Assembly: GCA_965112735.1 (NCBI GenBank)
Contig: OZ218960.1
Span: forward strand, 2,046,001-2,110,000
DNA from: Phaeosaccion multiseriatum
Lineage: Eukaryota > Protista > Ochrophyta, other classes
Reading direction: 5' to 3'
DNA: 64,000 nt
The notes below the pieces were generated by a model that had not been told where the DNA came from, did not search any database, and worked only from the letters and a program-made list of their open reading frames with translations. Positions 88 to 16,974 of the stretch are shown piece after piece. Numbering within the stretch: position 1 is the stretch's first letter; each line of letters opens with the position of its first letter. Both the position numbers and the translations under genes were made by a program.

Positions 88-2324
88 GGAATTCCTCGGC
101 CTCGGCTACGCGGTCATCTACCTCCACCGCAAGGGCTGTTCGGCACCTTTCGCTCGCACCTTCCAGCAAGTGCTTTCCAAGCACGTCGATCTACGCCTTA
201 TGGAGAGCCTCCGGGTCACTCCGAGGGGCGGGGTGCACGTGGCAGGGTCCGCGGACAGAGCGGATGGGCAGCAGGTGAGGGCGATACGCAGACACCACAT
301 CCATTGGCTTGACTCAGCCAAGAGTGGGCTTAATCAAGTCTTGTGTGGGGGGCGATAGGCAGGGTAACCTCTGGGGCTCGGCACTACTTCCTTCCTCCAC
401 ATGGACCAGCCGCTGCCATACCTCTCGTCCATCGGCTGCCATCTGATCATTCATCCGTGCCATCCATCTGCATCACCCATCCGCCGCCATGCATCTGCAG
501 GCGACCACTGACGAGGAGCTGGCGCAAGCCGTCATGCGGTACCGAGACGCTGTCGGGCAGTCCCTCTTGCTGCCGCTCTCGTTTGTGAGTGTGGACGAGT
601 ATCTGTGGCTGCTGAAGCTCGTGTGCGAGGAGCTCGAGCCCTTGGGGAGACAAGCCATGTTGTTCCTTGCGGCCGCTGTTAGCGACTTCTTCGTCCCCAA
701 AGAGGAAATGGCGGCGCACAAGATACAGTCCGCGAATGGGTGAGTCACAAGCATCCGCCACACTGCGGTACTATCTGCGTACCACCACCCGTCCCTCGCG
801 TTCAGAGGCTATGCTCCGATGAGGCCTCTCCCGTCCCGTTCCTTTCTTTCTCGCGGTGAAGGTGGTGGCGTCCGCTGCTGCTTGCGTCGTTCCGTTCCGC
901 CTCCCTGCCTGCCCGCCCACCAACCTGCCCGTGGCCGCCTCCCCTTTCATGCTTCGCGCTGCCTCTGCAGAGCAAAGCCTCAGTCGTCCCTTCCCCCTGT
1001 CCATGTCGTTGTGTTGTGTTGTGTTGTGTGTTGCTGTCCTGGCCTGGCGGAGGCAGGGGCTTGACCCTCCATTTGCAGCCCGTGCCCAAGTGCCTAGGGC
1101 TGGTGAGGTCAGTGTGGGCGAGTGAGGCCTTCTGCGTATCCTTCAAGCTAGAGACGGACGAAACCATTCTCATGCAAAAGGCGCTGGGGGCCATCAGTAG
1201 GTGGGTGGGTGCGTGTGTGTGTACGTTTATGCGTGTGTGCGAGCGTGAGTGTGTTTGTCTCTCGAGGTGAGGCTGCTTGGCTTGGTGCGGGGATGCGGCG
1301 GGCTGGGAGGGGTTCGCTAAGACGCAGAAAAGTAGCCAGAGCAAGTGCACAGCTTATGCTTTCGGCCCTAAGCTAAGGGACACTCCCTCCTCCTCCTCCG
1401 CAACCCCCCGCTCGTATCCTTACCAAACACACACACACACACGCGCACACACACACATGTATGTGAAGGTACGGGGTGCACTTGGTGGTGGCTAATGAGC
1501 TTCACAGCAGGTACAAGAGGGTGACTCTTGTGGAGTCGAGTGAGAGTCAGCAGATCATCGACAAAAACGACAAGGATGCGCACATCGAGCGAGTGCTCTG
1601 TCAAGAGCTCGCAAAGTGCCACTACGGGTAAGCAATCGGAAGCAGGAGAAGGGGCGTCACACACACACAGATATACATATGCATACATAGAGAGAGGGAT
1701 GGAGAAAGTGGGGTCCTGCTCTGCGCTACAGTGCGCCTATAGCATGGGGTATGGGGGCGCAAGTTAGTAAGGCGGGGGGGGAGCTGACCCTCTGATCTCC
1801 TTCTCGCCCCACCCACTCGCTACACACACTGCTCGCCCATGGCAGATACATGGCAAGCGGGGATGGTCCTGCGAACGGCGAATCGTCCGCCTCCGGTGCT
1901 GCTGCCACCCCCAAAGGAAGCAAGGCCGGGCTGCTCTCTCGCCCCAGCAACCCTCGCAGGAGAGCCGCGTCCAAAGCCCTCGAGGTAGGTTTACGTATGT
2001 GTATGTGTATGTGTGTATGCCGGTTGTGAGTACATGTACGTAGGCGCCAGTTGCGAGGCGCGAGGGAAGGGAAAGGGAGAGTCCTACGTGTATGTCCGGT
2101 CTTCCCCCTCTTGACACCCCCCCCCCCCTCCCTCCTCTCTCTCCCTCTGCTTCTCTGGTCAGGTGGGACGAGATGTGGCGGCTCATTTGTTCATCCCTTG
2201 TGTGTCTATCCTACTGTCCGTGGCGCTGCAGCGGCTCGTACAAGGAGGGATCCACGCGTATCGGGAGGGGCAGGGCAGAGGCGGGGCAGGAGAGTCCTCT
2301 TCGGCTCGGGTCGCTACCCGATGA
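88..2324 (+). CDS. PPCS: Phosphopantothenate--cysteine ligase (PPCS/CoaB), 5' part lies outside the window; exons ~88-274, 501-739, 1057-1200, 1469-1627, 1846-1984, 2163-2324
   Basis: Spliced translation gives EFLGLGYAVIYLHR, FLAAAVSDFFVP..HKIQS, LQPVPKCL, VSFKLETD and YGVHLVVANEL, all characteristic of eukaryotic PPCS. GT-AG boundaries are phase-consistent. Confidence 0.93.
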
Positions 2325-2349: not shown

Positions 2350-3300
2350 ATGGGTGTGCCAGTAAGTTCCCTGGGAGCCAGTCTTCTCCAGGCGATCAGA
2401 CCAAGCCGAGGGCTCACTGCATTGGCGGGGGCTCCTCCGCCTCTGGGGTGCTCTTCTTGAGAGAGCTTCCTTGATCGGCACAAGAAGGTACTTCAACTCC
2501 CTTGATCAGCAGAGGAAGGTACTTCAACTAGGCCCGGAAGTTGTTGGTCGCTTGCCTTGCAGAGGGTGGATTGATTAGCCCGTCGAGCGTCCAGCAGCCC
2601 CCTCTCTGCCGGCAGGCCCGGGCGTCTCGTGGCGTCGTTCCTCCTTGGGCCTCCTCTGCGAACATCCTCTGTGCGCTTCTCTGCCTCCCTCTTCGCCCTT
2701 GGACGGTCGCTATGGCGGGCCGCGGGCCGCAAGACACCCCAAGTCCGTCAGGTCCATCATGGAGGTGCTGCAAATCTGACGAAAGATGGGCCAGGTTTGC
2801 AGCGCTACTCACTGATGCAAGTGATGGACTTTGATTGACTTGTGCACCAACGGAGGCGAGCAGGCTGACGCACACGGTCGCAGACTCGACCCTTCCCAAG
2901 GGGTCGCCCCTGCCACGTGAGCATGATCCAAGCATGGATAAAGATGGTTGGGTTGGGATGGATTCGCAGGCCTTTCGGACCGTACCCAGCTTACTTGCTT
3001 CCCGGACAGCGAATTTCGATCCAGCAAGCATGTCGAAGAGGAAAGGCAATGTCCCAATACGAGGCGAGTGGGTCAGTGCGGCTTCTTCGGTCTCCATTCA
3101 GAGCAGCACCGTGAGCAGCGGGAGAGGGAGAGAGGGACTACAAGCTGAGAATCTCTCTGTGAGCTTTTTGCACGATTGGGTATGGAGGACATTCTGCTAT
3201 GACTTCCTTCGATATCGACATCCAGCGTCGTGTCGGCGTCGTATCGGGACCGGAGGGGCCTGCTGTCGTGAGCACCCGCCATTCAAGCCTTGAAGCCTTG
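2350..3300 (-). mobile_element. Possible heavily decayed LTR-retrotransposon (gag-protease) remnant
   Basis: Minus-strand fragments resemble a broken CCHC knuckle (CRY.RK..SH.IAECP, ~3185-3222). They are followed by TLPFLFDMLAGSKFAVREASKLG...LGRVESATV, which resembles a retropepsin (L.DTGA..F..) that has lost its motif. Multiple stops/frameshifts and no splice structure. Confidence 0.3.
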
Positions 3301-3606: not shown

Positions 3607-6084
3607 TTATAACATCGCACGGTCCACCGGCACATGTCTCTCTGCTTCTGCTTCCGCCGCGGACCGGACTGGGCTGAACCCCTTGGCGCGCTGCTCGTTG
3701 GCAGGCCTCGCCATTGACCACAGGGCTGAGTATGTCACAGAGAGAGCAAGAAAGCACACGGGGCTCGAAAAGGGGTAGACCCAGCCCGTTCGTAGAAAGA
3801 GGCTGACAAAGACTGGACCCCCGAAAGAGCCCATGACTTCTCCCGCCAGCAGCGAGCGGCAGTCCATCCACGCTGCCTTTCCCTCTGTGCTGTGGTGCTG
3901 TCGGCATGCAGACAACTTGCAGCCTCGAGCGAGGGCCAGAGCCAGCAAATTGGCAGCAGCAGCAAGCACAATAGCCAACCATGCCAGTGCTACCGGCAGG
4001 CCGATGGACACCAGGGCCGACAGCAGCCCCACGAGCAGCATCAGCGGAGCGAGTAGACCAACGGTCGATCTCAGATGCGCTCCTCCCGCCTCTGAGAGAT
4101 ACGCGGGCGTTAAGGCCGTGCTGAAGAGCCCCACATAGCAAAGGCCCAGAGAAGCACCAGTCACGAAGAGCACGAGCCCAGTCTGTCCTGATGACCACCC
4201 CAGACCACCCGAACCTTTGCCCAGCCACAGGTACAGGGGGAGGACCTCACGCATGGCCACGAATGAGGCATAGCTTTGTGTGACCAAAGAGTTAAGGGGG
4301 GGGGGAGGGTGGGAGAGCGGGCGGGAGGCAGAAAGAGAGTGAATGGGGTGGACGGGGTTGGATTTGCTGAGCTTTCCGATTTGGAAGACCCGCTGCAATA
4401 GCGGGGCGAGGCTTAGCGACGTGTGCCCCCCTCCTCTCATCCTCTTTCCCACTCACTCACTCACTCAGCTCACTCACAAGGCCCTTACTCACTCACCAAT
4501 CCCTCACTCACTCACTCACTCACTCAACTCACCTGATGCTAGACAAAGCGGGCCCTGCTGCAGGGGAGAGTCGGTCTCGCCGCCTTGCACAAAGTGAGCA
4601 GACACCGCACGGGACGACCAACTCGCCTCTGTCCTGCCCCGCTCCCTCTTCGTCTTGTTGGTTCCGTATCAAGCCTCCCTGCTTCTCCCTCGCGGTTAAG
4701 TTCCGAATCGAGTGGGATCGTCCCTCGGGCGTTCTCTCCCGCCTTGTTCCTCCTCCCCCCCCCCCCCCTCCTCCTCCTCCTCCTCCTCCTCCTCCTCCTC
4801 CTCCCCCTCCCCCTCCTCCTCTACCCGCCTCCTCTTCTTCATCATCTTCTCCTTCCTCCAAGCCCCCCCCCCCTCTCCCCCCAAAGACAAACTGGCGCGG
4901 CAAGGGCGAAGAAGCGTGTGCCTTCCCGTATCCTGCTAGCTTCGTAGTCGCCTCTTGCGGACGGGCGTGGGCTGCCTGAATGGCCAGCACAGTAACATCT
5001 TCATCGTCCAAACCCAAACCCGTGTCAGAGCATGTCCTCTCAGAACCTCCTCCCAGTTGGGCAGCCTCTCGATTGAGCACGAAGCTCTCCTGCCGAAGAA
5101 CCCACTCCCCGCGTCCCTTGTCGTAGCTAAACTTGTTCTCGCCACCCAGAAAGGCGTGCCCTTGGTTTTGCCCTCCTCCTCTTCCTCCTCCTCCTCCTCC
5201 TTGCCGCCGCCGAGCTACGGCGCCCCTCACTGCCCCTAAGCCCCGCCCGGCCAAGCTCGTCAACGCCCCTCCCACCTTCCAGACGACTCCTGGCGCTCCT
5301 CCTCGCCTCCGCCGTTCCTGCCAAACCGCCCCGTCATCATCCTCTTCACCTTCACATTCATCGCCGCCATTGTGACCGACGTTGTTGTGGTATCTACTCT
5401 CGCTTCCTGAGGAGGTTTCAATCGAAAACAACTCCACGACTTGCTCCACATCGTCCTCATCCTCGTCCTCGTCTCCTTGCTCGCCGCCATTGAGACGCTG
5501 TACAAAGGCCCTAAGCGCAGTCTCTTCGCTAGACGAGCCCAGTTCGACGCTGCTGCCGCCGTAGCAAGGGGGAATGTTCTCCAACGCGATGTGCTTGGCC
5601 AAAGCAGCGGTGATGCCTCGGCGACCCACCACCTAATACAATGAAATGTACGTGTGCGGGTGTGTGCATACAATAGATCGATCGATCGTACGCCGACATC
5701 GACGAAAGTGCACAGTGCGTAGGGAAGGAGGGAGTGAGTGAGTGAGTGAGTGAGTGAGTGAGTGAGTGAGTGAGGACCGCACAACGTGTCGGAGAGCAGA
5801 AGGGAGGGGCCACTCATTCTCCCCAATAAGAACATCACGCCCTGCCCTGTCCTCCCTTCATCCTTCCTTTCTTTCTTTCTTTTTTCTTTCTTTCTTTCTT
5901 TCTTGACCTGTATCTTTCGCTGCGTGTTCTCATTGAGCATCGGGCAGATACCCTTCCAGATCAAGCTGAAGTAAGCCGGAGCGTTGATGATGAGCATGCA
6001 GCGAGAGCGCTCTACGTAGTGGTCCTGCAGGGAAGGGCAGACAGAGAGAGAAGGGGAGAGAGAGAGAGGGGAGAGAGAGAGAGA

Positions 6085-6160
<76 letters not shown>

Positions 6161-8500
6161 AGGGAGGGAGGGAGGGAGGGAGGGAGGGAGGGAGGGAGGG
6201 AGGGAGGGAGAGAGAGGGAAACTTAGCACAATGATCACTAAAAAAAGCGACTAACCAGCCTCACCGCACTCAAGCCAAGATCGATGGATGGCGCCCCACA
6301 CACTAAATCATGTACGTACTTGCACGATTTTCGTTGCGCGTTTGAGGTATTCCAAGGCCTCGCCCGCCAGAGCCGAGAGGCTCACTCCAGCAAGGTCCAG
6401 CACGGTGATTAGCTGAGAGAGAGAGGGAGCAGAGACAGAGGGAGGGAAAGGGATAAGGAGAGAGGGAGAGGGATGGGGAGAGAGAGGGTGAGAGGAAGAG
6501 AAGGAGGGAGGGGGAAATGGAGCCCCTCTTCCACCATTGAGCCAGCAAACCACACACCCCTGACCCAAACTGGACGCTTTCAATTCACTTGGGAGGGTGC
6601 AGCGGCCCAAGGAAGGGAAAGAAATTAGCTCTGCGCACCTTTCCGTCATCCTGGTCAGGCTCGATGATCTTCCACAGGTACTCCGTCTCAAACAAGTTGT
6701 TGGCGAGCATAGCCTTATTTGGGGGGGTGGGGGGAGGGCGGGGTGAGAGCATGCGAGAGAGGTCTGAGAGAGCCCTTTTCGCCCAGCGTGTTGGTTGGGG
6801 AGGGTGGACTGAGCGATGAGAGGTGAGAGGTGAGATGGATGAGATCGCTGATAGATAGAAGATGCCGATAGCTCACTGCTAAAGGATAGACTAGATGATG
6901 CCGAATGGTTCAATAGCTCAATGACAACCAGAGATGTTGCCGATAGCTCACCTCCACAGAGATTCCTCGCTGCTTCATGGCCTCCAAGTCGATCTTACCC
7001 AATTGCTCAAAGTACACAGGGTGTCCCTCGAGGCCCCTCCCTGCAGGGCCGTCCGCCAAGAGCAGAGGATGGGAGGGAGCATGGGTGGAAGGTAAGATTC
7101 TGGTCTGTCAGCCAGGTACACACCAACCAATCAAGAGGAGGGAGAGCGAGACGAAGGAGAAGGGAAGGGAAGAGAAGGGAAGAGAAAGGCAGAGGAGGGC
7201 ACCACTTCGCGACGACATACCGTGGAAGTAGTGGGGATACATGGTTTTGAGGGCGGAGAAGAACGGCTGAGGCTTGGTGAGCACGTTGTCCACGTCGCAC
7301 TCCTGCCTCCACTCGAGTGTTAGCTGCCATCTCCGCGCGGCCTCCTCCGCATCCCCCCCGCATCCCTGCAAGTACCGTTTGGGCACTTCGGAGCTGAGCC
7401 CTCCCGCGCTGCTGCTCATCGCCGGCGGAGTCGATTCTAGACTCTCGCCTCCCCGCCCTCCCTCCCTCCCTATGATCTGAACCCCAGCCCCACGGGCAGT
7501 GTCAGTGTCAGTAGTATAAGCTGAGCTGCCAGACGAGAGACGGCGTAGAGCAGGGGTACCCTCCGCCAACTCGTTGAGGCTGACGCTCCCCAGCGCGAAG
7601 GTCGGTGGGGAGGGGACGAGGGAGCGCTCCCCAGGCTCCACCCTCCTCTCCTCGCCACTCCTAAGGCTCATGCGTCTCCACACAAGGGCGGCTCCCAACG
7701 CCCCGAAGATATAGAGTGTCCCTGCCACACCAGAGAGAGTGGCCAGAGGGTACTTGGAAGGTTTCGCTCCCCACAGGAAGCCCCCCAGCAAGGCTGCCAG
7801 TGAGGCACACATCGACACACAAGGGGTAAGGGGTGGGTCAAGGAGCGGGGCACAGTGAGCGACAGGGAAAGGGAGTGCACAGTCTCGGCGTCAATCGGTT
7901 CGTGACGACAGGCAACTCACCTCCAAGCACCAAGCCCATAGCAGAGGGGGGCAGGTCTCTGGACACTGGGTCCCACTCGCCCCCGTCACCCTTGCCCTTC
8001 ACATCCCTGCTGTTGCCGATGGCGCTGTCCATCAGAGACACTCCAAGCATGTACTGGAAGGCGGCCAGGACCCCCATGACCAGCCTCAAAGGAAGCACCC
8101 ACGCGTACGTTGCTCGTGTCGTCAGCCCCAGACAGCAAAAGGACCCCAAAAGGCAGGCCAAGAGTACAAGTAGCTTGGAGACAGTCGCCACGGGAGGCCC
8201 GATGGAGAAGTAGACGCGCGACAGGAGCAAGGCACCCGATCGGCCCAGGAAGAAGAAAGACGAGAGCAGAGCCACCCACAGCACTATCAGTGCCGCCTGT
8301 TTGGCGTCATAGCTGCCGTGGGTAGTATCCGCCCCTCCTGAGCCGACGATGATCCACCCACCCAGCGCAGGCAAAACAGGGAGCAGCAAGGAAGAGCAGA
8401 ATGCATCCCCGAAGAGGAGAAAGTTACCAAGAGCCCCCGCCGCTAGGGAGGGGGACGCGAGAGTAATCTGCACCGCCGAGTGCTGGGGGGGGAGGAGCAT
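3607..8500 (-). CDS. MFS transporter (ZIF1/ZIFL-like) with a Sec14/CRAL-TRIO domain inserted between its N- and C-halves; exons ~8500-7921, 7793-7221, 7040-6951, 6713-6639, 6412-6320, 6024-5908, 5632-4533, 4273-3607
   Basis: N-half TM helices end in ALLGGFLWGAKPSKYPLATL. Sec14 motifs: RYLQGCGGDAEEAARRW..TLEWR, YPHYFHG...GHPVYFEQLGKID, ITVLDLAGVS, HYVERSRCMLIINAPAYFSLIWK.ICPMLNENTQRKI, IALENIPPCYGG. The C-half starts EVLPLYLW...GGLGWSS. All splice phases match. Confidence 0.8.
6041..6220. repeat. (GA)n/(GAGG)n microsatellite in an intron
   Basis: Directly visible simple repeat. Confidence 0.95.
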
Positions 8501-8684: not shown

Positions 8685-10989
8685 ATGGGCCCCAAGCAGG
8701 TCGTGAGCAAGAGGCGAAAGAGAGAACCCGAGAGGGCGGGCTTGGAGAAGCAAGCCCCACCCCCTTCCTCTGAGGGTGAGGGAGCCTGTAAGGATGGCCA
8801 AGAGAAAGATAAGAAGGCTAGGAAGAAGCTCTGGTTCCTTCGTTCCCCGCTGAGAGTACTTGCCACGCTCACGGTGCTCCTGGGGGGCCCTCGCATCACT
8901 GCCGTGGCCTACCATTGGCTTCACCTGCGCTCGACGCTTCTGGGAGGGCTGGGTCCTTTGGATGTCTCACAAAAGAGGCAGCTATTGGTTGTCGGAACCA
9001 TGGGGGCAGGGACAAGTCAGATGAACTTAGAATTGAAGGGTTTGGGCCTGGAGACGGGGCACGAGGTGTCGGACTCCGAGCACGAGTACTGCAGGGAGGG
9101 GACGGTCAGCCATGCACACGCCCTCCGCTTCTTCCAGGTGGGTGCACGGGACACGGGTTCAGATGCATCTCTGCCGTACTTACTACCTCAGTGGGGTCCC
9201 AGAAAGCCCACACCCTCACACTTGTTCAATTGTTTTGCTTGCACGAACGCGGCGCGGCCACAGGGAGTTCCCAACACCAAGCTGCTGTGCAGGGAGCCTC
9301 GATTCAACGTGAGTCCCAGCTGCTTTGGAGGGCTCTTTTTTTGAAAGCCCTACTGGACAGGATCTGAAGTCCTACGCTGTCCCTGTCCCTGCCTATTGTG
9401 CCACAGGCCTACCACAGTAGCATGATGAGGGAAAGTAAGGAATGCTCCTATTACTTTCGGTGGTGGGACGAGTGCTGGGCGCGCGAATGCCGAGCTGTCA
9501 CACTCCAGGAGTACGGGTGCGCCGTGAGTGGGGGCAACAACACTTGCATCACCCCGTTCGCGCGGAGCTTACTCCAGGTCCGCCACCCCCTTCGGACCAT
9601 CGCCAGGTGAGTGGGTGAGGGAGGGAGTGAGTGATTGAGTGAGGGAGGGGGGGGGGTGGGTAGTGAGTGAGTGAGTGAGGGAGGGAGGGAGGGAGAAAGG
9701 GAGGGAGTGAGCGAGTGAGCGAGTGAGCGAGGGAGGGAGAGGGTGGGTGAGCGAGTGAGCGAGGGAGGGAGGGAGAGGGTGCGTGAGCGACTTGCTGAGT
9801 CAGTGGATGAGTGAGTGAATGAGTGTGTGAGTGAATGAATGAGTAAGTGAGTGAGTGAGTGAGTGATTGAGTGAGTGAGTGAGTGAGTGAGTGAGTGAGT
9901 ATGGGAGGGAGGGAGCGAGTGAGTGAGGTAGGGAGGGAGTAAGTGAGTGAGTGATTGAGGGAATACGGGAGTGAGTGTGTGAATATGGGAACGATTGAAT
10001 GGGTGTGGGAACGATTGCGTGAGGGAGCGAGTAAGTGAGTGAGGGAGCAAGTGAATGAATGAGTGAGTAAGGGAGCGAGTGAACCCTAACCCTACAACCC
10101 TAACTCTAACCCCAACACCAGCCTGGTGTACAAATCGGGCGGGGAAGAGACCGCGTGCTCCAACGGAGAGCATCAGCTGGCTGTGATCCAGTCGCTGCTT
10201 CCCGACGGCTTTGTGCGGCGCCACTTGGGCCTTCCGGACTTCCACTGGGCAGACAAGCTTGGCTGCAGGGAGCAGTTCGCGTGGTATTGGGTGCTATACA
10301 ACAAGGCAGTGATGCCCCATGTCGACGGGTGGTACCGGGTGGAGGACACTCCCCCCTGTAAGGTGGCGCGTATGGCGGGGTTCTTGGATGAGGACTATGC
10401 CGCAGGACAGGGGAAGGGGAGGCCAGACTTGGAGCAGACTTGCAGGGACAGACTCGCCTCTTCCGACGGGCCCGGGCGAGGTGAGGCTCACGGGTACCAC
10501 AACCGCAAGGTGAGGAAGAGGTTGGGATGGGCTGAAGGGTTGTAGAGGGAGGGCAGTAAGGCAGTAAAATTGGTAGGAGCAGTGGCCGCTGCGGGGGGGG
10601 GGGGGGTATAATAGACCGTTTCCCCTCTGCTCGGAGGGCCGGTCAATCACTACCCTGGTCAGCGAGACGAGAAGCCTCGATTCCCGAGGACCTCACAACA
10701 ACATCTATTGTTTTCCCACCTTCTCTTCCTCTGCTCTGTGCTGTCACCCCTCCCTCTGGTCCGCACTGTACTAAAGAACACGGGTAATCTCGTTGTGTCG
10801 TGGCAAGACTTGATGGACATCTCGCCAGAGCTTCACAACGAAGTGGCCCGGCTGGCAGCCGAGCTTGGCTATTGGGATGCGCCGAAGGTGGAGGAGCAGG
10901 AGCAGGAGGAGGAGAGCGCGAAGAATAAGCAGCCGGAGCGGAGCCCTGGCAAGAAGAAGAGAGGGGGCTGGACCAGGGGAGGGGGCTGA
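8685..10989 (+). CDS. Type II membrane P-loop/sulfotransferase-like protein; exons ~8685-9137, 9264-9308, 9407-9606, 10122-10509, 10777-10989
   Basis: Basic N-terminus plus hydrophobic segment, then LLVVGTMGAGT (5'-PSB-like), GHE, LQVRHPLRTIAS (3'-PB-like), YRVED and C-terminal LAAELGY. Introns are phase-consistent. Confidence 0.65.
9607..10121 (+). repeat. Intron made of (GAGT)n/(GAGG)n microsatellite ending in degenerate (CCCTAA)n telomere-like repeats
   Basis: Visible repeats; AACCCTAACCCTACAACCCTAACTCTAACCCCAAC at 10082-10116 lies just before the AG acceptor. Confidence 0.9.
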
Positions 10990-12033
10990 GGATATGCCCC
11001 CGAGCTTTAGGGTGGGCTTCGAGACGCCTACCTTCGAACGGCCGAGAGATGGAGAATTGCAGCGGCCCTTCCACGCTTGTAGCTCTCGTCGATATTTCTT
11101 GCCTCCTCTTGCTTTTGATGGGAGTGGGCGCGGGGCATTCGAAGTGGAGGGAGGGCGCAGAGCGAGCACCAGCAACGCTTTGTGGGCACCACTCACTTGC
11201 CACTGCTCTGTCCCCATCGGCAGCAGAGGAGGAGCAGGAGAACATGAACAGCAGGAGCAGCGGCAGCAAGAGCAGCAACGACAGCCCCTGCGGCCCCCTG
11301 CAGCCTTCCCTCGCAAGTGCCCCTTGTTGGGCCTTGTCGTGGGCCTTGACCATAACAGGGGACGACGTGTCGAGAGCCCAGGCTATGGTGCAAGCCTCAC
11401 TCGGGGTAGGCCTTTGTCGAGTGGATGAGCAGTGCTGAGTCGCGCAGCAGGGCAACAGGGCAACAGGGCCGGTCGCCGCTCGAAGGGTTTGCCCTACGGC
11501 GGCTGCAAGGGGCAGGTAGACAGTTAAGCAGGAGGCCCACCAGGCAGGCATGCAGGCAGACAGGCAGGCAGACAGGCAGAAAGGCAGGCAGGTAGGCAGG
11601 CAGACCGACAGCCAGACCCGGGCAGACACGGGCAGACACGGGCGAAGCTCGGCGGATGTCGCGGAAGATCAAGGGCGCTAGCCACTGACTCGATGCAGCC
11701 CTTCTAGGCAAAGGTGAAATTGTGTTGTTCTCGCTCGAGAACAACTCTTATCTATCCTGTGTTGCCCGGCATCCTTTATCTCTCTCTCTATCAAATGTAA
11801 CTGTAGGACCGCCAAAGCCCGTAATGCAACTCTAGAACCGCCAAGGGATTGCGTCGGCTTGTAAAAAAGACGGTCAGTCTCAACACTTGTTCAACCTGTG
11901 TTGTGGCTCTACCTCTCTGTAAGTGTGGCTCCTCCTTCCTCCCTCTATGTTCCTCCCTCTCTCTCTAAGTGTGGCTCCTCTTTCTCTCTCTCTCTCTCTC
12001 TCTCTCTATCTCATAATGTGTATGTGTCTCCAT

Positions 12034-15475: not shown

Positions 15476-16974
15476 ATGACGTTCGGAGGAGCGTCTGCTT
15501 GTTTCCTCCTCCTCCTGTGGAGTAGGGGGGTCAGCGGCCGACTGAGAGGGACGGGCGGAGATGAGGACAGCAACGTGGTGGAAAGCGTCGACGCCGTGTT
15601 GGAGCGCGCTGAGAAAGTGAAGAAGAGTGTCCTCGTTACAGGATTTGAGGCCTTTGGCAAGCTTGGGAATGCTACAAACCCAGGTAAGAGTTGCACTGCC
15701 CGCGGGAAAGCCTTTCCTATTTCCCTATTTCCTCACTTCCACCGCTGTGTGCCCCCCACAGCGGCGGAAGCGGCCATGAGGCTGCAGGGCAAGTGCAAGA
15801 CTGTGTTCTTGGAAGGTAATGCCCCATTAGAAGTTTGCTATGAGGGCTGGCAGTTGCCTGTGAGCTTCGAAGGCAGCTCCCGGGTAAGCCTCGCCCTGCA
15901 AAAGACGCCCAATCGCTGGAGTGCAGTCATTCACCTGGGCTACGAAGCGGAGTCGAAGGGGCTGAGGCTCGAGATCGCGGCCGCCAATGTGAAGGCCAAC
16001 GAGGAGCTGGGCTCTACGGACAACTTCCTGGTGCCCTGCAACAAGGGGCCAGACTCGCCTTTCGAGGACATCGTTGAAGGGTGGGTGATGAGGGAGGAAA
16101 GAGGGTGGTGGGTGTCGCTCACCATCTCATTGCTGCTCGAACTATGTCCTAAGCTACGTACGCGCCGTTCCATGTTCCATCGTCTCTTACAGGGGTCCTT
16201 GTCTCCAACCGACGACAGCACCAGTTTCTAACTTTGATCTGACTGACATCCAAGCCATGCTGGCCGTGCACGGCGTGGGCAAAGGAGTGGTCAACCACGA
16301 CACGACGTGGAGCAGGGACGCTGGGGCATACTATTGCAACGATGCTTACTATCGAACGCTGGTGAGGGCAGAAGGGAGGGAGGGAGGGGCGGAGCTGGTG
16401 TCCCCTCCACTCGTTTGGGTCTTGTTGCGGACAGCTGGGCTGGTCTTCACCCCGATCCTCCCAAGCAATGAGGATACTTTGGCGGCCAAGTCCTTCCGCC
16501 TCATAGTCTCCCCCCCCTTGTGTCTTTTTCTTCTCGCGGCCCTGCTGTCTCTCTCACCCGTCTTTGTGGTGGCTAAGCTCCGCCCATCCATTACTTTCCC
16601 TTCCGCCCTGACCAGTACACCATCCGAACGCAAGGCCAGCACATGCTTCCTGCCCTCTTCATACACGTTCCTCCAGTGCACATCATGCCCGCGGAGGTCA
16701 CCTCCAGGTAAGTACAATGGTGCAGTGATCAATCAATCGTGGGGCCTTGGTTGGGCTCTGATGCCTGTGCTCTGACTCCCGAGGGCCAGGGACCGCTGAG
16801 CTCACCTTGCCTATTGCCTATGCCTTCGCTTAGCTGTGGATGGCGCTGATGCCTCCCACCGGTCTCCGCCTTGGGTGTATCATGTGCTGCTCCTCCGCCC
16901 TCTCCTGATCTCCTCTGCGCTCCTCTGCCAGGCTGGTGGAATACGTGGCGGAATCCATTCTGATGGCCAAATAA
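15476..16974 (+). CDS. Pyroglutamyl-peptidase I (peptidase C15) with N-terminal signal peptide
   Basis: VLVTGFEAFG...NP, VIHLG...LRLEIAAAN (catalytic E), SRDAGAYYCN.AYY (catalytic C), FIHVP (catalytic H). Five exons in phase. Confidence 0.9.

Follow-up and report, generated by a model that had tools for sequence, protein, structure and literature searches.

In a 64,000-nucleotide stretch of Phaeosaccion multiseriatum DNA (contig OZ218960.1, positions 2,046,001 to 2,110,000; hereafter the window), the minus strand from position 8500 to position 3607 holds one intact gene for a polytopic membrane protein of 1,097 amino acids (aa). In this protein, six transmembrane (TM) helices are followed by a Sec14/CRAL-TRIO domain, a long loop rich in glycine and acidic residues with a conserved motif, and six further TM helices. 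The parts come from known families, certainly in the case of Sec14 and probably in the case of the membrane body, which we tentatively assign to the major facilitator superfamily (MFS). Their combination is a new, conserved, and undescribed architecture. An earlier note on this DNA, made from the letters alone, knew of no characterized MFS-Sec14 insertion, and full-text literature searches likewise found no paper describing the combination. The only discussion of a stramenopile Sec14 protein that was found concerned a soluble periplastid Sec14 (PMC5756292).

The DNA of the window is eukaryotic and GC-rich (GC ~0.6). Open reading frames (ORFs) form a chain on its minus strand between 8500 and 3607, and eight exons were joined from a reading of that strand. 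They are listed below together with the tblastn matches obtained with P0001, an NCBI gene model from Phaeothamnion confervicola.

8500-7921, minus strand: exon 1, an ORF with splice donor and the ATG at 8500, encoding TM1-TM4 and the start of TM5 (aa 1-193); P0001 match at 8470-7922 (E 5e-28)
7793-7221, minus strand: exon 2, encoding the end of TM5, TM6, an Arg-rich exit, a poorly conserved linker of ~95 aa, and, from ~7383, the first Sec14 helices; P0001 match at 7434-7222 (E 2e-17)
7040-6952, minus strand: exon 3, Sec14 domain with G-H-P-V-Y-F-E-Q-L-G-K, the equivalent of Sec14p Y122 being retained; P0001 match at 7038-6922 (E 3e-6)
6713-6639, minus strand: exon 4, Sec14 domain, 25 codons; P0001 match at 6716-6636 (E 9e-4)
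6412-6320, minus strand: exon 5, Sec14 domain with L-I-T-V-L-D-L, the T175 equivalent being retained and the S173 position lost; P0001 match at 6460-6320 (E 5e-7)
6024-5908, minus strand: exon 6, Sec14 core and gating-helix region with D-H-Y-V-E-R-S ... N-A-P-x-Y-F-S ... N-E-N-T-Q-R-K-I, containing the E207, T236, and K239 equivalents; P0001 match at the exon with E 3e-15
5632-4533, minus strand: exon 7, which completes the Sec14 domain (to ~5540, I-P-P-C-Y-G-G) and continues with an acidic and a Gly-rich stretch, the loop motif, 24 glycines, and a Cys-rich patch before TM7; P0001 match by tblastn at 5632-5489
4273-3607, minus strand: exon 8, TM7-TM12 and the C-terminal tail, with the TAA at 3609-3607

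All seven introns run from GT to AG, and the joined coding sequence of 3,294 nt has one stop, the terminal one, with neither internal stops nor frameshifts. The tblastn search matched every one of the eight exons at the coordinates of the model (E 5e-28 to 9e-4), so that the join of eight exons in frame proposed in the earlier note stands with the same start and stop. When the model was aligned with P0001 and P0002, an environmental relative, the three proteins were colinear from the first to the last helix, undisturbed at all exon junctions. Within exon 7, the three conserved blocks lie in the same frame of one 367-codon ORF. Furthermore, the DNA of the locus was found identical, letter for letter, in contigs of four DNA runs from one sample.

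Simple repeats fill the introns and flanks of the gene (window 4450-4535, 5745-5800, 6040-6225, and 9451-10245). Tracts of (TCAC/CTCA)n read as S-L-T-H repeats in the ORF lists, and intron 5 carries long (CT)n/(CCCT)n tracts. These repeats are the break points of the short-read contigs in all four DNA runs. Apparent joints in the run contigs were rejected as artefacts, their sides being only 20-21 letters long and located at simple repeats. In exon 7, a (GGA/GGG)n tract at 4739-4889 on the minus strand encodes 24 consecutive glycines; run contigs end on either side of it, and its length in the assembly may vary.

The family to which the gene belongs is small. Searched with phmmer among 1.84 billion representative proteins, the last exon returned only seven relatives (P0001-P0007). 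In the two best, P0001 (1,008 aa) and P0002 (865 aa), the match lies at the C-terminus of a long protein; both have a central CRAL_TRIO domain (107 and 99 bits, respectively; profile positions 2-153). P0002 is encoded by an uninterrupted, intronless ORF of 865 codons (L001:6001-8598) on a 19.9-kb metagenome contig, and the same ORF was seen again on contig L002 of an independent run. Because this environmental relative has the whole layout within a single ORF, the window locus is read as a single gene and not as mis-joined genes. Together with hydropathy and AlphaFold secondary structure, it bears out the earlier claim that a Sec14 domain lies between two six-TM bundles within one gene.

In P0003-P0007, the match was confined to the C-terminal half. 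The contigs of P0003, P0004, and P0006 show that these are the last exons of genes with the full layout. On contigs L005 and L007, N-half, Sec14 exons, and C-half follow one another in this order, and L008 carries the last two thirds. A metagenome scan with alignment A3 added one new locus of the same layout (L004). Looked for across relatives in this way, the layout proved common to at least six loci in two well-separated clades. The Choristocarpus tenellus protein P0005 (L006:4153-5409) is annotated with 418 aa and comprises the C-terminal six helices only; the 4.1 kb upstream of it on the contig revealed neither N-half nor Sec14 exons. Either the gene model is truncated and the gene has a long intron, or P0005 is a genuine paralogue of half size.

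A tree built from the C-halves of the family members separated two clades with 100/99 support. Clade A comprises the window protein, P0001, P0002, and P0005 from Choristocarpus, and clade B comprises P0003, P0004, P0006, and P0007. Members with the full layout are present in both, which, provided that the root lies between the clades, means that the fusion predates their split. Only Phaeothamnion and the brown alga Choristocarpus are named sources of family members; the remainder come from sequencing runs and metagenomes. Word-indexed protein searches gave, among the candidates listed, only the queries or one known member, a result limited by low-complexity words and weak as a statement of absence.

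The identity of the window protein to P0001 and P0002, respectively, amounts to 42 and 32% in the N-terminal TM part, 54 and 47% in the Sec14 part, 49 and 43% in the loop motif, and 44 and 33% in the C-terminal TM part, compared to 15-31% to relatives in the linkers. As the N-terminal TM, Sec14, and C-terminal TM parts are more conserved than the linkers, all three are taken to be under selection. Two intron positions seem to be common to the window gene and the Phaeothamnion gene (L003), one after D-x-G-K/Q and before L-[IV]-T-V-L-D, the other after K-I-Q/T and before [VI]-x-G-[RK]-R-G.

The Sec14 part was located at ~7383-5540 on the minus strand, close to the ~7390-5490 given in the earlier note. 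Exon 6 alone matched the Pfam CRAL_TRIO model (PF00650) with 35.8 bits (E 8.6e-9; gathering cut-off 22.6). Residues 325-560 of P0001, which aligns with the window protein without gaps in this part, matched yeast Sec14p with E 3e-23 over Sec14p residues 53-265, and the next matches were Sfh1, plant SFH5, and human SEC14L2-4. Similarly, a Foldseek search with the AlphaFold model of P0002 placed Sec14p, Sfh1, and AtSFH5 first (E 1e-8, template-modelling score ~0.5; predicted local distance difference test, pLDDT, of 60-74 in that region of the model). We therefore consider the assignment of the inserted domain as a true Sec14/CRAL-TRIO member secure on sequence grounds. The earlier note had described a complete domain including CRAL-TRIO_N, and that part did not stand. 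No family member matched CRAL_TRIO_N (PF03765) at E ≤ 0.1. Only the last helices of the N-lobe (R-Y-L-x-G-C-G-G-D ... W-R) align, from about Sec14p residue 53-56, and the family either lacks the first ~50 residues of Sec14p (helices A1-A2) or has them in unrecognizable form.

For a view of the ligand pocket, lipid barcode residues were mapped through the P0001-Sec14p alignment, in which the chain index +3 equals the native numbering, and transferred to the window protein by a three-way alignment. The offset was checked on the residue types of S173/T175, Y111/Y122/Y151, E207, T236, and K239. Schaaf et al. reportedly assigned, in 2008, R65, K66, E207, T236, and K239 to the phosphatidylinositol (PtdIns) barcode and Y111, Y122, Y151, S173, and T175 to the phosphatidylcholine (PtdCho) barcode. 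Equivalents of E207, T236, K239, Y122, and T175 are retained. R65 is replaced by Cys, K66 by Gly or Asn, Y111 by Phe or Val, and Y151 by Thr, and the S173 equivalent is lost inside a four-residue gap. By these residues, the predicted pocket is Sec14p-like.

The membrane body consists of six helices before and six after the insertion, as determined by hydropathy and from the secondary structure of two AlphaFold runs; the earlier note had expected such a 6+6 arrangement around PF00650. Lys and Arg residues near the membrane number 21 on the inside (both termini and the central loop) and 3 on the outside. By this positive-inside count, both termini and the whole insertion are predicted to face the cytoplasm, which would place the Sec14 domain there. 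The resulting topology equals the canonical one of MFS carriers (6+6, both ends inside).

Conserved features of exon 1 are the TM1 Asp (L-L-F-x-D-A), L-P-V-L-P-A-L, G-R-S-G, R-x3-G-x3-A in TM4, and the loop E-W-D-P-V-x-R-D. In exon 8 they are R-E in TM7, a G-G-L-G loop, an Asn in TM10, and a Cys/His loop between TM10 and TM11. The TM4, TM5, and TM11 motifs are named here after the motifs of 12-helix drug antiporters reported by Paulsen et al. in 1996. At the motif B position in TM4, R-x3-G-x3-A is invariant and aligned to R-x-x-Q-G of VMAT2; the motif C position in TM5 reads G-x3-G-x3-G-G and is without the Pro of motif C; the motif G position in TM11 reads G-x3-G-P. Short motifs of this kind can arise in helices by chance. 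Charged or polar residues are kept inside helices across both clades, namely the TM1 Asp (aligned to the TM1 Asp of VMAT2), the TM4 Arg, the TM7 Arg-Glu, the TM10 Asn, and the TM11 Asp/Glu.

Clade A shows a Cys/His-rich loop between TM10 and TM11 (K-L-S-A-C-R-x-H-H ... A-A-W-M-D-C; window 3895-3975, minus strand), a motif that is absent from clade B, and a Cys patch right before TM7 (window 4545-4610, minus strand). Both are predicted to be cytoplasmic and may be a metal site or acylation sites. The last three residues of every complete member form a hydrophobic tripeptide (AML, RFL, QFV, RLM, QLV, or EFV; window 3610-3618 and P0002-P0007), which may be a sorting or endoplasmic reticulum export signal.

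The affiliation of this body was approached by several kinds of search. For the N-half, ESM-atlas language-model neighbours scored 0.96, and all listed sets with a Pfam family were MFS_1. For the C-half (0.94-0.97), the families were MFS_1, BT1, OATP, PUCC, Acatn, and MFS_2. As a specificity control, ten MFS Pfams were excluded. The named families above 0.87 were then MFS_Mycoplasma, Folate_carrier, FPN1, ATG22, and UNC-93, with PTR2 at 0.86, all of which we take to be MFS-clan members; VanZ, at 0.87, was the first named family from outside the MFS. Additionally, a profile of five N-halves (A5) gave 12 weak matches to PDB sequences, 11 of which were VMAT2 or NorA (E 0.5-7.5). The alignment to VMAT2 was colinear through TM1 (L-L-L-D-N..P..P), TM4 (R-x-x-Q-G), an acidic loop, TM5 (G-x3-G-P-x-x-G), and TM6. 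Taken together with the topology, these results make it probable that the twelve helices form an MFS body, divergent in sequence and of the drug:H+ antiporter (DHA1) type.

A number of results speak against this assignment. With E 0.5, the VMAT2 match is not significant alone. At the motif A position, where the earlier note had likewise seen no evident canonical motif, the sequence is degenerate (G-R-S-G-x-L-x3-R); motif A stabilizes MFS conformations. Pfam MFS models matched neither the window halves (E ≤ 1), nor P0001-P0007 (E ≤ 0.1), nor the five N-halves (E ≤ 10). The C-half profile found no MFS protein in the PDB, and single halves gave noise only against PDB sequences. Comparison of the N-half (A5) with the C-half (A4) by hhalign gave a probability of 1% (P 0.05) and an alignment out of register, thus no mutual similarity, as is also the case in many true MFS proteins. 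Reference sets comprised eight MFS proteins and eight non-MFS membrane proteins from E. coli MG1655, and 80 MdtL relatives, a set too uniform for a deep profile (71-100% identity). In hhalign against the E. coli MFS alignments or the MdtL family, reversed controls scored equal or better, and hmmsearch --max did not separate the eight E. coli MFS proteins from the eight other membrane proteins. The AlphaFold models, built from alignments of only 5-10 sequences, were poor (pLDDT 46 for full-length P0002 and 59 for the window C-half). They return 6+6 helices as secondary structure and are too poor to tell whether the halves pack as one MFS fold, the point for which the earlier note had looked to AlphaFold. 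Fold searches with the membrane parts (Foldseek PDB, ESM-atlas, VIA-wide) found generic helical bundles only (Z ≤ 7.1). Finally, the MFS is the largest membrane family, and language-model neighbours may lean towards it. The claim of two MFS halves in the earlier note is thus carried by the language-model neighbours, the weak VMAT2/NorA matches, and the topology, and finds no backing in Pfam or in hhalign, which did not exceed its controls.

One 22-row alignment (A6) was discarded since MAFFT had put the first ~120 residues of C-half fragments on N-half columns. The overlay was treated as an artefact, hhalign having found no similarity between the halves, although it might faintly reflect the internal duplication that MFS proteins are expected to have.

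Between the Sec14 domain and TM7 lies a disordered loop of ~340 residues, mostly acidic or Gly-rich and including the 24 consecutive glycines, so that the domain is flanked by tethers of ~95 and ~340 aa. The longer of the two contains one conserved element.

4955-5158, minus strand: family loop motif, A-F-L-G-x-x-N-x-F-x-Y-D-x5-W-V-L-R ... D-E-D-V-T-V-L-A-I-Q-A-A (alignment A8)

Seven of its residues are invariant in seven members, and its identity to relatives (43-49%) contrasts with 15-31% around it. In the AlphaFold model of P0002, it forms a beta-hairpin followed by a helix. Neither Pfam nor the PDB gave a match to it at E ≤ 10.

For the function of the protein, our preferred explanation, to which we assign a probability of about 40%, is a working carrier whose activity would be set by a built-in lipid sensor. 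The TM1 Asp, TM4 Arg, TM7 Arg-Glu, and TM11 Asp/Glu suggest that a charged or amphipathic solute would be moved in a proton-coupled manner, and the retention of buried charged residues across two old clades is more easily reconciled with a working proton-coupled carrier than with an inert anchor. In the proposed mechanism, the Sec14 domain would be flexibly tethered to the loop connecting the carrier's two rocking halves and would load or release a lipid at the cytoplasmic leaflet. Upon loading or release, the domain and the loop motif would dock on, or leave, the cytoplasmic face, and the docking state would permit or block the rocker-switch movement. A lipid-gated carrier is preferred because Sec14 modules in multidomain proteins usually sense or target and do not haul lipid, and because carriers with attached sensors (SPX-MFS) exist. 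With tethers of ~95 and ~340 aa, however, coupling to the rocker switch would need the postulated docking.

The same architectural evidence would also suit a lipid hand-off machine, in which an MFS-type flippase or exporter of lipids or lysolipids is served by the tethered Sec14 domain as a dedicated cytosolic carrier that feeds or takes lipid at a cytoplasmic or lateral opening. MFS lipid transporters exist (MFSD2A, Spns2, LplT, and LtaA). The Sec14 domain belongs to the Sec14p/Sfh1/SFH type, which is competent for transfer; its gating-helix region is intact, and the equivalents of E207, T236, and K239 are present. The long flexible tethers would reach both the bilayer and the mouth of the carrier. 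We regard such a machine as possible but somewhat doubtful, given that Sec14 modules in most multidomain proteins target or regulate and do not carry lipid in bulk, that the acidic and basic residues buried in the helices recall small-solute antiporters, as does the DHA1-like pattern of motifs, and that the PtdCho barcode as well as R65/K66 are not retained. If, instead, the body had lost transport, the protein could be a membrane-anchored lipid-transfer protein in which the twelve helices only hold the Sec14 domain at a single organelle, a membrane contact site for instance, with the loop motif or the C-terminal tripeptide as sorting or tethering signals. The degenerate motif A, the failure of MFS profiles to recognize either half, the long tethers, and the conservation of the loop motif and of the tripeptide agree with this. 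A mere anchor would, however, not need twelve helices at 32-44% identity with invariant charges within helices in two old clades, and we consider this explanation unlikely.

Still less probable, in our opinion, is a body that is not MFS at all and has another or a new 6+6 helical fold resembling MFS only in composition and helix count, which would put the Sec14 domain in an unclassified membrane protein. In favour of such a body, all conventional tests failed (Pfam, hhalign with controls, hmmsearch --max, the C-half PDB profile, and fold searches). Against it stand the neighbours of both halves, which were searched independently and fall in the MFS clan only, non-MFS families appearing from 0.87; the two independent PDB proteins that match the N-half best, both of which are DHA1 MFS proteins with the right helix order; and G-x3-G-P in TM11, R-x3-G in TM4, and the MFS topology. 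That the gene is an annotation artefact, with two or three neighbouring genes joined in frame by chance, or a pseudogene, is very improbable. It is true that no RNA run containing the locus was found, the four runs with it all being DNA from one sample, and that the low-complexity exon 7 also yields long ORFs on the opposite strand. The intronless relative, however, has the identical order in a single ORF, six loci are colinear, 3,294 nt run without stops or frameshifts, and exon 7 has all three of its conserved blocks in a single frame.

To our knowledge, Sec14 domains and MFS carriers, although both very well studied, have always been met apart. A conserved family with a Sec14 domain in the loop that links the moving halves of a carrier would be a natural experiment in the coupling of membrane lipid composition to transport, or of lipid extraction to translocation. 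In its boldest form, the proposal would be that of the first carrier with a lipid-transfer domain in the hinge of its rocking halves, where lipid loading of Sec14 gates the MFS rocker-switch or where Sec14 and the MFS cavity pass lipid to each other, the hairpin-helix motif acting as docking latch, and of a new lipid-coupled class confined to the brown-algal lineage. We offer this as a speculation that is rather unlikely to hold. Were the lipid-passing version true, a single polypeptide would take a lipid out of one leaflet and then transport it, either to the other side of the membrane or out of it. Were the body not MFS, the family would be of interest in another way, as an unclassified membrane fold. 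The small size of the family (seven relatives in 1.84 billion proteins) and its intronless member make it tractable for expression, lipid-binding, and transport assays.

In the surroundings of the gene, the long ORFs at 8685-9344 (plus strand), 10643-11629 (minus), 2528-3097 (minus), 802-1350 (minus), and 15476-16231 (plus) gave no Pfam match at E ≤ 0.01, and nothing among the neighbouring ORFs in the window pointed to a functional gene cluster at this locus.

Compared to known systems, the inserted domain resembles Sec14p, Sfh1, and the plant SFH proteins in its Pfam CRAL_TRIO match, its fold match, the retained E207/T236/K239/Y122/T175 equivalents, and its P-x-x-Y-G-G end. Whereas those proteins are soluble or carry C-terminal nodulin or GOLD modules, the domain described here is inserted inside a polytopic membrane protein, and it is without recognizable helices A1-A2 and without the R65/K66, Y111, Y151, and S173 residues of Sec14p. 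The membrane body shares with the DHA1 antiporters (VMAT2/SLC18A2, NorA, MdfA, and EmrD) its 6+6 helices with both ends inside, a TM1 Asp followed by P-x-x-P, R-x3-G in TM4, a motif C-like TM5, and G-x3-G-P in TM11. At E 0.5 or worse, this similarity is statistically non-significant. Pfam gave no match, and motif A is degenerate. The central loop of DHA1 antiporters is a short amphipathic linker, whereas that of the family comprises ~640 aa with a folded domain.

MFSD2A, Spns2, LplT, and LtaA offer an analogy for lipid hand-off, being MFS bodies able to carry lipids or lysolipids, but they are not known to have a built-in lipid-transfer domain and were not singled out by Foldseek or by the PDB profile matches. 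The nearest functional analogy is provided by the SPX-MFS proteins of the PHT5/VPT1 type, vacuolar phosphate transporters whose SPX domain senses inositol pyrophosphates. The SPX domain is N-terminal, whereas the Sec14 domain lies between the two halves, and the likeness is one of analogy only, no homology being expected. In these proteins, as is proposed for the family described here, an MFS carrier is combined with a soluble ligand-sensing domain that sets its activity.

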